This document shows, piece by piece, positions 19,308 through 49,200 of a stretch of DNA of 64,000 bases. Within the stretch, counting starts at the first letter, position 1; the number at the start of each line of letters is the position of its first letter. A model generated the notes under the pieces. That model did no database searches. It was given only the letters and a program-made list of their open reading frames with translations, and had not been told where the DNA came from. This DNA is from Trichoplax adhaerens (Eukaryota > Animalia > Placozoa): NCBI RefSeq assembly GCF_000150275.1, contig NW_002060949.1, forward strand, positions 1,423,836-1,487,835, read 5' to 3'. The translations under genes were made by a program, and so were the position numbers.

Positions 19308-22559
<3,252 letters not shown>

Positions 22560-22756: not shown

Positions 22757-23746
22757 AAAGTTCACCTTTGACACTGCATCTGAATAGCACTTCAGAACCT
22801 ACTCTCTACAGTACAGTACTGTTCAACAGGCGTAAATCTAGGTCTATTTATTATGCAAACTGCACCGCATCAAAAAGAACCTCTTGACAATGCTCTCCCC
22901 TCCCAAAATTTCCACGAATTTTCAGCCATGCTGTAAAGAGAACTGGCTCCCACACGTACAGTGCTGTGCATACATACTGTACATACTATACCAGTGCCCA
23001 TTGCACAGTACCCTAATGTAAAAGTAAACAGTCATAGATTTTCGGAAGCATGGTACGGTGAGCCAAAAGGACCCCAAATTTGGGCTACTGCTGCATGGAC
23101 ACTGAGAACTCCCTATGCTTCGGATACGGAATAATGTACAGTACTGTACACTCGAAATAGAAGGTCTCTAGTACTGTGTACAGTACAGTACACGATGGAT
23201 TACAATACTGTACAGTACAGTGTACAACAGTCATTCGATCATGTGCATTCAGCACAGATATGCAGTTAGCAGTCAATAATAATTATAATCAAACATAGAC
23301 TGTATAATCAGTTTTATTGATGTATGTGTTATGGCCAGGTGGATTGGCTACTAATCCGTATTCAGAACTGCACTCCACTGCATTGATTATTTTTCAACGA
23401 CATTAAATCCTCATTATTATGAATATCGTAATCTATGAAAATTTCAAGATTTTTTCAAATTGACAGTGTTGTAATATCCAAAAAATACAGCGACGAAAGT
23501 ACTATAAATATGCATAATTAATCATTACTTGAATGCATATTAATCAATTAATTACTTATTATCTCTTTATATATTGTACTGTACGTGTATTGCCATTAAT
23601 TACTGTAGTAATCATAGAGATATAACATTTTAGGTTTTTTCTATGGTAACAATTATAATATACATATACATCGTATAATGCACAGTACAATACTACATTA
23701 ATACTGAGATTATATCTTACAGTATATACTGTAGTATACACTTTAA

Positions 23747-26700
23747 CTACGATATGATTACCCGGCTTTGTAGATGAGAATGAAGCGGCTTCACCCTTTG
23801 CTTACGCGATAATCCTAATCGAAGGGGTTTTGTAGACTGCCAAGGACGAAGTTTTGCTATATCATTTTGCTTATTCTCAATTATGCCTATTAAAAATCAT
23901 TATTGTTATACTGTGATGAGAGATTCAGTTTGTCGATTTTAAGTAAAGAAAACGTAAAATTATAGGACTGTTCACATATTTAATTATATTACAATACACG
24001 TATATGTAATTATACAATACATATATATATATATATGTACTCGTATAGCACCTTGTTGCGAGGAATGAAGGAAAGTTGGGGTTGCTCCTGGCGCCTAATA
24101 ATATAGTTATTAAATCCAGAAGTGATTTCAGTACGTCATTGACCATTCAGCAATCACAGCAATGATGCGCAATTTTATTGCAAAATTTTGAAATATAACG
24201 TTACTATTATGTTTTAGAATTGATTTTAAAGTAATCTATTTCATACGCATTTATAGTAAAGTACCTCTTTTATATTGGATACGGAGGACGTAGTTCGCTA
24301 ATTTCGTAATCAATTTTTTTATCTCTGTCATCTGCCTCAGTCCATTGACCCAAGAAACTAGGCGGCATTTCAAATGTCTTAGCCTTGTGTTCAAGAAGAT
24401 ATTCATCATCATTTTTCGAGCGTGCAGCGACTTGTTTATTGCGATTGCCACAAGGCGCAAGGCTGTAAATTTTATCAATAATTTTGGTATTAATTTCAAA
24501 TTTAGGATTAATTTGAGCATTTACTTTCAAAATTGCCAAACAATGACCAAGATGGCAGTATTGGATAATTTTATCGACATGACCATAGCATGTAGTGAAG
24601 AATTCTCTCTTTAAGTCCTGTACTAGTAGACGAGTAAATATCTCGCTCGATACGTATCGATTGTTCGCCTCTGCTTCATAAGTGAAATTCATAGAGCAAC
24701 TAAAATGATGGTCCTTTACTCTACTATCTGCTACCGATCGTGTATCTAATGTACGATTTAAAAATTGATTAATGTTAGTCACTATCAGTAATATGATACA
24801 ATAAATCTACTATGTTATCAGCACATCCTAGTATTTTGCTGCAAAGAAGTTGAAGCAACATTTACCAGCTGTGCTTAATTTCAGCTTCTTGTGATGAGAG
24901 CTAGGATGAGTGGCGAAGAGGCTAGCATTATCAACTTGTTTTCTTTTATGATTTAAGCAAGCAAACGTCGGACTGATTGTAGATTGATCAATGTAATCCT
25001 TTAAGTGATGTGTTATACTGGTAGCTCGATAATAGTTGGTTATCAGAGTACAGAGTAAATACAGTATCTTATCGTGATTCCATGTGTTAGTTGAGTTGGT
25101 TGGATATATATCATAGTTAGCACCATAAGAAGTAATCCAAATGTTAATCTTCTCTAGATTTAACCCACTGACTGTGTTTTGATATGTTGCAGTGATGACT
25201 TTATACTGCAAGAGATAATCATTAAATCTTTTAAATACAACATATTCAAAGTGACTTAGTTCTTGGAATGAAGCAGGAAGTAATACATGTCCGACATCGG
25301 AGAACTTATCATCCGGGACACTCCTCAGAGACTTCAAGGGATAATCTAGGCACTCCATAAAGGCTCTTGAGGAGCAATACATCCTCCTGTCGCTACTGAA
25401 TCTTATAATTTCAGAATTAGATGCATTTATTATTGACTGTGGAAGACTGAAACTGAGTTTGGTAGTAATAAACCGAAAAGGCCCATGATTATAACCGGCT
25501 TTAGTGAATGAGTTCTTTAGTTTAATAGCTATACAGGTTTTTGTTAATATCCGAGATTTTGTTCGTTTTCGCATAATCATAAAATGCTTGACGATATTTT
25601 TGCTACTGTTTCCATTGCGTCGTGCTATTGGTCTCATATTTTGGTGCTTATCAGATAGCGGTATAAGAGTTCTCATGCGTCTTAAACGAGCTTGATTCTT
25701 TGGATGCCATGCGAGTAGTATCTTACTTTTGAGATAGAGGCTGATATTTTCCCTTGAACTCTTGATGGTTACCAATACATTCGTTTGTAGAGTCTTCTTG
25801 CACCTTAAAAGAAAACAATTTACAACATGGTCATCAATTTAATAAAAGGGTTTAAAATAATGATGTTATAATTACAACATAATGTATGCTGTACTTATCA
25901 TCCGAAAGTGTAGCTACGCGACTTATTCCATTTCTTGATAGACATAAACTTATACTTAATAAATCTCTCAACGGATTCCATAGGATGTCATGTCGAATTC
26001 CTAATTTTATTAGTAAAAATTTTGAAGGATTTCTATATGATAAATAACTAAAGGTGGACTATACCACAAAAAGTTAACATTTTATCTGAATCTTTCAAAA
26101 CAGTTATCAATATACCTCTGATTTAAAAGCAACTTGAAATTAATAGAAGCATATGCTAGATGTCTATTTACCGTTAATAGTAACAGTCCCATCTGATGAA
26201 AACTGATGATTCCAACAAATTTTCTTAGAATTGCTGGATATAATGCTGAGCTCTTTCTTCGTATTATTATTTGCGTTACAAATGGAATTATCGGGTAGAT
26301 TATCTAATAAAAGATGTCCAAATTTTTTAATCCAACTGTTATGTAATGGCTAAATTAAAATATATTAGAATATTATATGCACATATAACTTTCATCTACA
26401 TATTGGATCTCATAAATGGCCTAGCTATTGCTGAAGAATGGGTTTAGGAATTAGGAAGGTGGAGGTCAAAATCTTGAGATAATAAATACTGCACTAATGT
26501 CACGATCAGGTGAAATCAGTAAGCCTAAAACTTGTTTAATTCTGTATACGCAGTTTGGCTCATCATGGTACGTACTAGTACAAATTTTAAGAGACTATTC
26601 AAAATTGAAACTTTATAAACGAAGAATTTTCATTGAATTTATTATTAAGATACGGTCTAAAATTGTATGTGTACCAAGTGTTGCTATTTTGAAGATACGA

Positions 26701-27406: not shown

Positions 27407-28027
27407 TGAAAATATGAGTTCTGGTTGAGAATTAAAAATTCTTCACTGTAAGTTGAAAATTTTCACTGGTCTTTCTTGCATCCGTAGAAAATTTTCTTTG
27501 AGTTATTATAGTTTTGTCCAAAATTTTTCATTTCAACGTGATGCGATTCAATTCCTGAGGTGAAACAACTGCGACTGTAGGACATGGCGAATGAATCATA
27601 GCAGTCGTTGTGATGTTGATCACGTTCTACAGCACCACGATTTACCACGCAGTCGCTAACTACGACGACAATTTTAATCATGCTATGCTGAATGATCTGC
27701 TATGTCATTTAAAGATAGATTTACTCGGTTTCCTCGAAAACATAAGTTCTGGTTGGAAATTAAAAATTCTTCACTGTAAGTTGAAAATTTTCTCTGAGTT
27801 ATTATAGTCTTCTCCCAAATTTTTCATTTCAACGTGATGCGATTCAACTCCTGAGGTGAAACAACTGCGACTGTAGGACATGGCGAATGAATCATAGCAG
27901 TCGTTGTGATGTTGATCACGTTCTACAGTACCACGATTTACCACGCAGTCACTAACTACGACGACAATTTTAATCATGCTATGCTGAATGATCTGCTATG
28001 TAATTTAAGGATAGATTTACTCGGTTT
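27407..28027. repeat. Recent ~300-bp tandem duplication (two copies)
   Basis: 27407-27729 versus 27736-28027 are highly similar; one copy has a ~33-bp indel bounded by gaaaattttc direct repeats. Confidence 0.93.
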
Positions 28028-46010: not shown

Positions 46011-46269
46011 GCCTATTTGTACTACAGCAAGCTAAGTAATCATGCAATCAATCACTACAGAGGTTGTCATGTTGAGAAATCATAGCCAAGCTTATTCACA
46101 ACTGTAGTAATATTGGTAATTTGGGGATTCCACTCTACTATTCGACTTCTTGTCGAAGAAGTTGGTTACAATAGGATAACGACAAAATGATACACCAAAG
46201 TCAAGCGCTATCATCTAACATCTTGTTTTTTTCCGTCATTTGTTGATAGGATCAAAGAAAAGTGAAAAA

Positions 46270-49200
46270 ATGAAACATTTTGATATTGGTGCTACATACG
46301 AATTCAATATTCACCATATTCAGTCACCTTCTGGTGAAATTTGGGGACATCTGCAAACAAGTGTACAAGATGTTCGTGAATTATCCCATGTACTCGATTT
46401 TTTCTATAGTAAATGTGGTGATAAAATTCCCCCCTTAACTCAGGCTAAAGTTGGTCAACTGTGTTGCGCTAGAACCAAACGCTTCGATGATGATGGCTGG
46501 GCACGTGGTAAAATTATCCAACTCGATGAAAGTAAGGATAATTTGCGCCTTTTCTTTCAAGATTACGGTCACACCCAATGGATACCACTACCCAAGGTCA
46601 AAATGTTAAAAAATACTTTCAACAATTTACCATCCTTTACTGTTCAAATTAAACCAAGTGATATTACTAAAAGTGATTATGCACATGACGAAGAATTAAG
46701 TGCGCAATTTTGCCAACAATTAGAAAAATTAATTTTACATCAAAAAATTAAATGTATCGTTGAAAAGATTGAAGAAACTGATTTACACAAGATATTAGTT
46801 GCTCGTATCTACTTAGCAGATGGAAGAAATGAATCTATAGGCTCAATATTGTCTCAGCAGTTACGTCGTATGAGGTCCACTTTCCAGCATATTTTACCCG
46901 ATTGTAAAGAAGGACAAGATATTGATATCTCTATCTTACACGTTCACAATCCGGGACAATTCTATTGTAGAATAGCCAGCCAACAGTCACAAGATAATAT
47001 CAAAATGGATGAATTGGAACGCTGTCTACGACTCTATTATGGTCTTTCTATTTCAACCGATCAAGACTACCCGCTCCAAGTTGGAGCTGCTTGCGCTGCA
47101 CCTTTTACTGATCGAAAATGGCATCGAGGCATAATCAAGCAAATTGTATGCGATGATGGTGATAAAGAAGCATTAGTACAGAGTGTAGATACAGGTGCTT
47201 GCGAATTGATTGACAATGGCAAAATTAAAGGATTAGAACCCGAACTTCAAGATATACCGGTCAATATCTTTCAATGCCAGCTACACGGTATTAAGCCCAA
47301 CGATAGCAAATCTACCTGGTCTGTCGATTCCACGCTTTTTTTACAACAGTTAGCTCAAGAACAGAGAATTTGTGGTCTCGTACGTAGGATATTACATGAC
47401 AACTCTTCTATAGGAAAGCAACTCTACAGTGTTGAATTGCATCGGCCTGGCGAAAACTTAACTGTAAACGAACAAATGATCATGGATGGTTTTGCCGCTT
47501 CTAGCTTATCTCGACAAAGTACCCGTAGCATTACATCTCCAGATGAATCTAAGAATTGTAACGATATCGATAATAGTCAACTAGACGAAAGCAATAATTG
47601 CAAGAGTGTTTGTCAATCGAATGCTAGTAAAGTTTCTTTTGGTGATGAAATGTTTGATGTTGATCATAACGAAGAAAGAAATGCGAAGACTTTGGTAAAT
47701 AGCCCCAAGTCTAACAGTAAAGTAAATATTGTAGGCAGTTTTAAGCACAATGAGCAAGATCGAAATGACTGCAAAAAACCTATTACCTACACTAATGGTG
47801 AAAATTTACAAGCTAAAAAATACCAAAACAAAAAATGGGAAGCAGTTGCCAAGGAAGAAGATTTGATCAAGCTTGTCTACGATCGATCTCGTTTAGTAAC
47901 TTCTGTTGATAATCCTGACGTTATCGTAGCATTTATCAAGGATCCTAGTGAATTTTGGTGTCAGTTTGCTTCTAATATTTCCATAATCAATGATATCCAA
48001 GCACGTATGAACGAGTATTCCCAACAAAAAAGACTTCGAATACCGAAGGATATCAAATCAGGTGAATGCTACTGCACGCGCTTTGACAAAGATGATGTTT
48101 GGTATCGAGGAAAAGTTATTGGCAAATTTGGAGACAAAGCTAGTGTTTACTTTATTGACTACGGCAACACAGATTGGGTGCAATTGAAAGATATCATGGT
48201 ATTGGAAAATGATTTTCGTCAGCATCCGTGGCAAGCGTTTACTTGCAAATTAGATGGAGTCTGTCCAATTCTTGGTAGCAGTTGGGGTTCGAAAGCGACA
48301 GATCAATTCACGGAAATGGTAACAAGTAAAACATTCTGTATGACCATTAAGACTGAGATTGATGACAAATTATCAATTATACTTGTTGATAACGAGTCGA
48401 AACAAATTAATAATCGTCTAGTTGAAATTGGTGTGGCTAATAAAGAAACTTACAATCTGCTGAAGAAACAGTTATCTTCCACTTACAGTAAAAATTGGAG
48501 GAGAACTGACAATGACTACAAGACATCAATGCCAACTATGAAATTTCAACCGTCTATTTCAGCAAGTCATGAAAAATTGACTACTACTGATGTGACTGAG
48601 CACACTAAGCATAAACAACCTTCGGAATTTAACCATGTCCAGGTATGCTAGCAATATTATCGTTAATATAACTGCTTGGATATCGATGGATCGTACATGC
48701 ACGATCATAGAGCATGAATGCATCATGTATAAAGTTTCCCTTATTTATAAAACTCTAGTAATGCGTAGTTTATTTATATATCATCTTACAGAAGGTAGAG
48801 GAAAGATTAAGTTTGATCGTGGGAAAGAAGACTAGCGTTTGTGTTATGCATGTTGAATCTCCTAACTGTTTCTATGCAGTTATACCAAAAATTGACAGCT
48901 TTATTGATATGGAAAAGAAATTGCAAGATTTTTGCGCTAACGCAAGTAAGATGTCCACTCGATTTGTGATTGCTATTTTGGCAGTAAAAGTCAAGTAATT
49001 TTAATGTTGATCTTACAATAGGAAGTCCTGTTTCACCAGACGAATTTTGCCTTGGTAAAATGTACGTTGCCTTTAGTACCAAGTTTAATAAATGGTGCAG
49101 ATGCATTCTAACTGACAAAAATGAAAGAGGCGTGATAACTTGCGACGTTTTCTATATTGATTATGGTACGGCCGAAAAATCTATCCAAGGCACGAGTTTG

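Follow-up and report, generated by a model that had tools for sequence, protein, structure and literature searches.

The question raised by this locus is whether a short minus-strand stretch of a Trichoplax adhaerens contig, missing from the list of open reading frames (ORFs), is the real last exon of a gene, and which gene it would complete. The window, meaning the whole 64,000-nucleotide stretch analysed here (contig NW_002060949.1, positions 1,423,836 to 1,487,835; G000:C1408:1423836-1487835 in the scanned assembly), had been the subject of an original prediction made from the letters of the DNA, which proposed a hidden exon carrying a RAD51-interacting motif with its core at 23780-23827. 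The explanation that we favour, and consider probable, is that this stretch really is coding and forms the C-terminal exon of a placozoan gene present in one copy, that it encodes a peptide of the RAD51AP1/RAD51AP2 type, and that the body of the protein most likely comes from the ORFs upstream. Both the exon and the body are absent from the public protein sets reached by our searches.

The exon itself is defined by two features:

23747-23886, minus strand: terminal coding exon, entered in phase 1, with 45 full codons and a TAG stop at 23749-23747; it encodes the RAD51-interacting motif.
23887-23888, minus strand: acceptor AG (3' splice site), following A/T-rich sequence (tttttaatag).

The exon starts at 23886 behind a canonical acceptor, tttttaatag/GC (the slash marks the splice boundary), and phase 1 means that its first codon is completed from one upstream base and GC. 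Translation of 23884-23747 on the minus strand gives 45 residues and then a stop, and includes DIAKLRPWQSTKPLRLGLSRKQRVKPLHSHLQSRVIIS up to that stop. The core, P-L-R-L-G-L-S-R-K-Q-R-V-K-P-L-H, lies at 23827-23780, the wider motif reads K-P-L-R-L-G-L-S-R-K-Q-R-V-K-P-L-H-S-H-L-Q, and the stop follows 10 codons past the Leu-His pair. Of the three minus-strand frames across the exon, only the motif frame is free of stops; its codon-usage log-likelihood ratio is mildly positive (+3.6 to +4.1 bits), and the plus strand over the exon contains no ORF of 30 amino acids or more. The exon lacks a start codon. Its setting is a window with a guanine-cytosine (GC) content of 28-42%, mostly about 33%, in which genes are broken up by short introns. 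The translation, the acceptor and a frame that stays open to the stop confirm the hidden exon as it had been proposed.

A HMMER comparison with the Pfam profile of the RAD51-interacting motif had also been suggested in the original prediction, and the exon peptide does match it: it aligns with positions 19-38 of the 39 in PF15696 (RAD51_interact) at 37.6 bits and E 2.6e-9, where the curated gathering cut-off is 25 bits. When the whole 105.6-Mb assembly (105,631,681 bases in 1,414 contigs) was scanned in six frames, the top PF15696 site of the genome was this very exon, at 36.5 bits and E 8.2e-7. Because it is the best site of the genome at this E value, the motif is far beyond chance.

The peptide can be read residue by residue against a known structure. 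A sequence search of the PDB aligned it with human RAD51AP1 chains 9qnc_B and 9qn8_B, with 13 of 15 core residues identical; 9QNC and 9QN8 are RAD51AP1-RAD51 filament complexes (Kuhlen et al. 2025, PMC12704761). In that alignment the placozoan row is T-K-P-L-R-L-G-L-S-R-K-Q-R-V-K-P-L-H-S-H and the human row N-Q-S-L-R-L-G-L-S-R-L-A-R-V-K-P-L-H-P-N. Two sites of the human protein have direct equivalents in the exon:

23804-23824, minus strand: equivalent of Site-M, L-R-L-G-L-S-R, identical in all 7 of 7 residues to human RAD51AP1 332-338 (9qnc_B, 9qn8_B).
23780-23785, minus strand: equivalent of Site-C, Leu-His, corresponding to human RAD51AP1 L345/H346 (L328/H329 in the older isoform) and to RAD51AP2 L1143/H1144.

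The likeness to human RAD51AP1 (also called PIR51) thus covers Site-M and the segment Arg-Val-Lys-Pro-Leu-His, both identical, as well as the spacing of the sites and their position near the C-terminus. In the human complex, Site-M goes into a pocket of RAD51, and binding, filament stabilisation and strand exchange all require it; L345/H346 of Site-C lie in a shallow groove, contact D184 and Q145 and act as the recruitment anchor (PMC12704761). Two-hybrid mutagenesis had earlier identified R316, L319, L328 and H329 of RAD51AP1 and L1134, L1143 and H1144 of RAD51AP2 as critical (Kovalenko et al. 2006, PMC1636435); the placozoan peptide keeps every one of them, and its critical leucines have the 9-residue spacing of the human protein.

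The partner was compared as well. The RAD51 gene of this genome lies on contig C1409 at about 2098758-2100300 in some 8 small exons, and comparison with the human chains, exon by exon, shows that Glu50, F92, R95, T119, Q145 and D184 are kept, with I100 replaced by Val. Position 50 is Glu in both species by alignment, where the structural paper writes D50 (PMC12704761). A DMC1 gene is also present, on contig C1414. From these matching surfaces we infer, with good foundation, that the peptide of the motif exon binds RAD51. Homology with the human filament structure suggests that the ATPase surface of RAD51 would serve as anchoring point for the Leu-His pair, after which LRLGLSR would enter the pocket that the N-terminal domain and linker of RAD51 make up. 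Such an insertion would stabilise the filament and tether the rest of the protein to it; this remainder is most likely encoded by exon A (25676-24866), with exon B (24781-24270) as an alternative or additional part, and would carry no recognisable domain.

The motif also occurs elsewhere in the genome. The six-frame scan returned a second PF15696 site, L002 (G000:C1393:972953-976033), at 23.2-24.3 bits, just under the cut-off. It is the last exon of a gene at about 269-1597 of L002 on the plus strand (genome about 973221-974549), which has about 5 exons, all introns in phase 1, and a low-complexity product with runs of Asp, Glu and Ser followed by Lys-rich stretches. Its terminal exon ends with VRIGLSKKQSVKPLHPSANNSK before the stop, and the motif, V-R-I-G-L-S-K-K-Q-S-V-K-P-L-H-P, has Leu-His-Pro as in human RAD51AP1. 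A clear WVPP Site-N was not seen in this gene, the nearest sequence being RPRPRWNVT; the body is of the RAD51AP1/NUCKS1 type. An ortholog with 65% identity is present in a placozoan-like genomic sample (L016; Logan SRR30664515 contig 14440, 53-755), where the terminal motif exon is also in phase 1, ends with PVRIGLSRKQPVKSLHPNANSK before the stop and contains V-R-I-G-L-S-R-K-Q-P-V-K-S-L-H-P. Since a RAD51AP1/NUCKS-type gene also has a phase-1 terminal motif exon, and keeps it in this second sample, the motif is in use in the placozoan lineage. Since that acidic and basic gene, with its own motif exon, is separate and on another contig, the carrier in the window is not of the RAD51AP1 type. Placozoans thus have a RAD51AP1-like gene, and the window gene would be a second, structurally different motif carrier, in the place that RAD51AP2 holds in vertebrates. 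A third PF15696-like site (L003, G000:C1405:1934198-1934254, plus strand, beginning SLRFGLSREAKTPLHAYYF) scored 16.7-19.8 bits, has an in-frame stop directly upstream and no AG, and was set aside as chance or a decayed exon.

The body of the window gene was sought upstream on the same strand, where the following features were placed:

24866-25676, minus strand: exon A, from the first in-frame ATG at 25676 to a phase-1 donor after G24866.
24782-24865, minus strand: intron between exons A and B, 84 nucleotides, phase 1, reading G/GTAAATGT at its donor and ctgatag/TG at its acceptor; it joins ORFs of 315 and 170 codons in frame.
24270-24781, minus strand: exon B, 170 codons, with the coding frame supported up to its own TAA stop at 24272-24270.
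24263-24264, minus strand: GT of GAG/GTACTT, the one donor of canonical appearance close to where exon B ends; it lies 5 nucleotides past the stop, and its phase agrees with that of the terminal exon only if the non-coding frame is read.

The exon A ORF is open from 25775 (25775-24828, 315 codons), with a possible acceptor at 25803, and the ORF of exon B spans 24782-24270. The layout consists of one exon of 811-936 nucleotides, one of 512 nucleotides with its own stop, and the motif exon of 140 nucleotides. Both upstream exons are long stop-free ORFs in DNA of 33-36% GC. The 302 codons of exon A include no stop, where the other frames have 25-28, and its log-likelihood ratio is positive even under a codon model trained only on the window's unrelated Tudor ORF; for exon B, codon usage gives +16 bits in the 5' half and +28 to +31 bits in the 3' half. 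These measurements support exons A and B as coding. Each is single-copy in the genome, and they are therefore neither repeat nor transposon. Neither exon A nor exon B has a Pfam domain, and exon A modelled by AlphaFold from its single sequence reached a pLDDT of 32.6, unusable for fold comparison. The exons were searched separately, and joins were used solely to check reading frames. Exon B ends with ISELRPPYPI before its stop (24273-24302, minus strand), in which L-R-P-P resembles the FxPP/WVPP recombinase-binding P-motif without the essential aromatic first residue. A second frame over its 3' half (24257-24523, minus strand, codon starts congruent to 1 mod 3) is open for 89 codons and ends exactly at the GAG/GTACTT donor, where its phase fits the motif exon; its codon usage speaks against a coding role.

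How the motif exon would be attached to this body is the step at which the proposal needed revision. It had been expected to follow ORFs at 24280-25803; in that form the link does not hold up, as there is no canonical in-frame donor at the end of exon B, and the canonical in-frame join is available only from exon A. Since exon A ends at a phase-1 donor and the terminal exon has a phase-1 acceptor, the two can be joined cleanly, in frame and with canonical sites only, which means skipping exon B through an intron of 979 nucleotides (24865-23887). The junction codon, G plus GC, is Gly, and the product, counted from the ATG, would be about 316 residues long, with Lys, Arg and His abundant in its tail. 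Exons A and B by themselves would give a motif-free product of about 440 residues. AATAAA, a candidate poly(A) signal, is found at 24179, 90 nucleotides past the exon B stop, and this signal, together with the clean skip of exon B, suggests that the gene can end in either of two last exons, of which one carries the RAD51 hook and the other lacks it. Exon B may be either such an alternative last exon or an internal exon forced to use a weak donor. Two further routes out of exon B were tried and rejected. A second intron within exon B, placed so as to bring the reading frame to GTACTT, has 49 formal solutions, all with a poor donor or acceptor and with a target frame that is codon-negative; a U12-type donor, CC/GTATCCAAT, at the end of exon B is in phase 2 against the phase-1 acceptor, and no branch-site-like sequence stands at the right distance.

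Several observations weigh against our explanation and should be considered together. Exon B reads into TAA at 24272-24270, and this stop is real: in the final 85 codons, codon usage gives +28 to +31 bits to the frame it closes and -20 to -29 bits to the rival open frame, a margin of about 50 bits. The in-frame phase-1 donors within exon B are all weak, with a pyrimidine at +3 (G/GTCAAT at 24349, A/GTTTCT at 24358 and C/GTCCTC at 24289). Compatible phases in exon A and the terminal exon would arise by accident in one case out of three, and there is no AATAAA within 400 nucleotides after the terminal stop. No transcript, gene model or ortholog of this gene was obtained. Word-index protein searches with exon A and with exon B returned no homolog in the length range of 94-551 amino acids, and a feature search of the ESM Atlas with exon A gave no usable match. 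An exhaustive representative search with the 45-residue exon peptide gave 0 matches at E <= 0.001; as this query is too short to reach the vertebrate proteins at that database size, all that follows from the null is that the representatives include no annotated protein nearly identical to it.

Some of these observations would be accommodated by other accounts of the locus. The exon could be a relic that was once joined to exon B through GAG/GTACTT, until a frameshift, a stop or a one-nucleotide assembly error cut the link, and the present product would then end at 24270 without the motif. It is consistent with this that exon B has a single canonical donor close to its end, which sits just past the stop, in phase with the terminal exon in the 89-codon open frame, that an A7 run occurs at about 24322-24316, and that AATAAA follows the exon B stop. 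However, the codon usage of the last 85 codons favours the stop-ending frame, so any shift must be very near the end, the motif and its acceptor are intact, and skipping exon B provides an in-frame canonical join without any repair; on balance we find a relic improbable. We also give little credit to the idea that the motif exon belongs to another transcript with unrecognised upstream exons, ORFs A and B being an unrelated neighbour gene. The link between them consists of strand, adjacency (384 nucleotides) and compatible phase only, and exon B has its own stop and candidate poly(A) signal; yet no other coding frame exists between 24270 and 23886, where all three frames contain 5-13 stops and have negative log-likelihood ratios, the motif exon has no start codon, and the next gene downstream, UDP-glucose 4-epimerase-like by ORF reading, begins past the motif exon. 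Chance resemblance in non-coding, AT-rich DNA is extremely unlikely. The motif is short, and the weak third site, L003, does look like chance, but the genome-wide E value, the canonical acceptor and clean frame, and the identity to the human core, which includes every functionally tested residue, all contradict it.

The ancestry of the motif exon is a separate matter. RAD51AP2 is a vertebrate, meiosis-specific partner of RAD51 (Kovalenko 2006, PMC1636435; Ma 2022, PMC8754306), and in human RAD51AP1 and RAD51AP2 alike a short last exon encodes the whole RAD51-binding region. The original prediction called the window gene RAD51AP2-like. Its distinction from RAD51AP1 holds: the window gene lacks the acidic and basic low-complexity body and the WVPP Site-N, has Ser in place of Pro after Leu-His, and shares its genome with the L002 gene on C1393, which fills the RAD51AP1/NUCKS role. 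The positive assignment to RAD51AP2 rests on architecture and a few flanking residues. In the candidate gene structure a short last exon would likewise encode the C-terminal motif, and the body is unrelated to RAD51AP1, non-repetitive and mostly contained in one large exon. The C-terminal 55 or so residues of the form joining exon A to the terminal exon are basic, and a basic C-terminus has been described for RAD51AP2. The T-K-P-L lead-in (basic-Pro-aliphatic) resembles mouse SRPI, the deletion of which abolishes RAD51 binding, although SRPI may not directly abut the core; and the window motif has Leu at +3 after His. Against RAD51AP2 stand the body of about 270-440 residues, where RAD51AP2 has 976-1159, the exon layout, which is comparable in kind yet much smaller and has a stop in its middle exon, and the sequence after the Leu-His pair, where the RAD51AP2-specific Tyr-Leu-Lys is His-Leu-Gln in the window (Leu-His-Ser-His-Leu-Gln), so that only Leu matches. 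Both placozoan motifs, moreover, have Lys-Gln where human RAD51AP1 has Leu-Ala, which fits an exon duplication within the placozoan lineage equally well. True orthology of the window gene to RAD51AP2 is thus plausible, though we lean against it. A third relative, the RAD54 N-terminus, shows limited similarity to the motif, in a segment that is internal and dispensable for RAD51 binding (PMC1636435). It has residues of the Leu-Gly-Leu and Leu-His type in common with the window, but scores far lower, whereas the window match is near-perfect, C-terminal and not on a Snf2 ATPase.

The competing evolutionary reading, which we regard as a real possibility although short of probable, keeps the same exon and the same binding function and is compatible with our explanation of the locus; it holds that a lineage-specific gene, and not an ortholog of RAD51AP2, took the motif by duplication or shuffling of a RAD51AP1-like phase-1 terminal exon. 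Both placozoan genes do enter the motif exon in phase 1, the phase used by every intron of the RAD51AP1-like gene, and both have the Lys-Gln after Leu-Ser-Arg/Lys; no relative of the window body was detected in the searches made, and the RAD51AP2-specific Tyr-Leu-Lys is not kept. Set against this, the two placozoan exons are unrelated outside the core (39-46% identity overall), the window motif is nearer to the human core (13/15) than to its placozoan paralog, and the flanks differ in the way they do in the vertebrate pair, with Leu-His-Pro in the RAD51AP1-like gene and a basic-Pro-aliphatic lead-in like that of mouse RAD51AP2 in the window. The most far-reaching proposal would be that placozoans carry both a RAD51AP1-type and a RAD51AP2-type partner, that the split between the two, and with it a dedicated meiotic RAD51 factor, predates the divergence of placozoans and bilaterians, and that the window gene is unannotated because it is silent in clonal cultures; we consider this unlikely.

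The motif and its mechanism are in themselves already fully known. RAD51AP1, its paralog NUCKS1 and RAD51AP2 are still called vertebrate-specific in two papers (PMC1636435, PMC4787752) and in later abstracts. The proposal that the motif exists outside vertebrates is borne out, the carrier genome being that of a placozoan. In the searchable literature, no paper pairs RAD51AP1 with Trichoplax and there is no mention of PF15696, IPR031419 or "RAD51AP1-like" names; among the papers listed by a multi-taxon literature search, none contains RAD51AP1. Automatic annotations may already list RAD51AP1-like proteins in invertebrates, and this limits the surprise. Because the RAD51-inserting segment is identical in the placozoan and the RAD51 pocket is conserved, the motif dates back at least to the ancestor that placozoans share with vertebrates, and this way of controlling the RAD51 filament would be no younger. 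Two natural and very divergent carriers of one motif also offer a way to test what the motif does alone. If the second carrier is germline-specific, it would provide a handle on placozoan meiosis and a candidate germline marker; and if the reading with both partner types is true, the window gene would be a molecular marker of the poorly observed sexual phase of Trichoplax.

The surroundings of the gene add a few minor observations. Downstream, UDP-glucose 4-epimerase-type ORFs (by ORF reading) occupy 21247-22553 on the minus strand, starting about 1.2 kb from the motif exon, and a dense island of TACTG/CAGTA pentamers fills 22800-23200 and 23600-23750 between them and the exon; pentamer density gave no signal locating the 5' end of the gene. 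Upstream, at 27463-27681 and 27771-27977 on the minus strand, two tandem and near-identical short ORFs of 72 and 68 amino acids both start with MIKIVVVVSDCVVNRG. About 22 kb from the RAD51-motif gene, an uninterrupted plus-strand ORF of 803 codons (46240-48651) encodes three Tudor domains (PF00567, E 8e-61) of the TDRD type, and Tudor proteins of this type are typically germline-associated.

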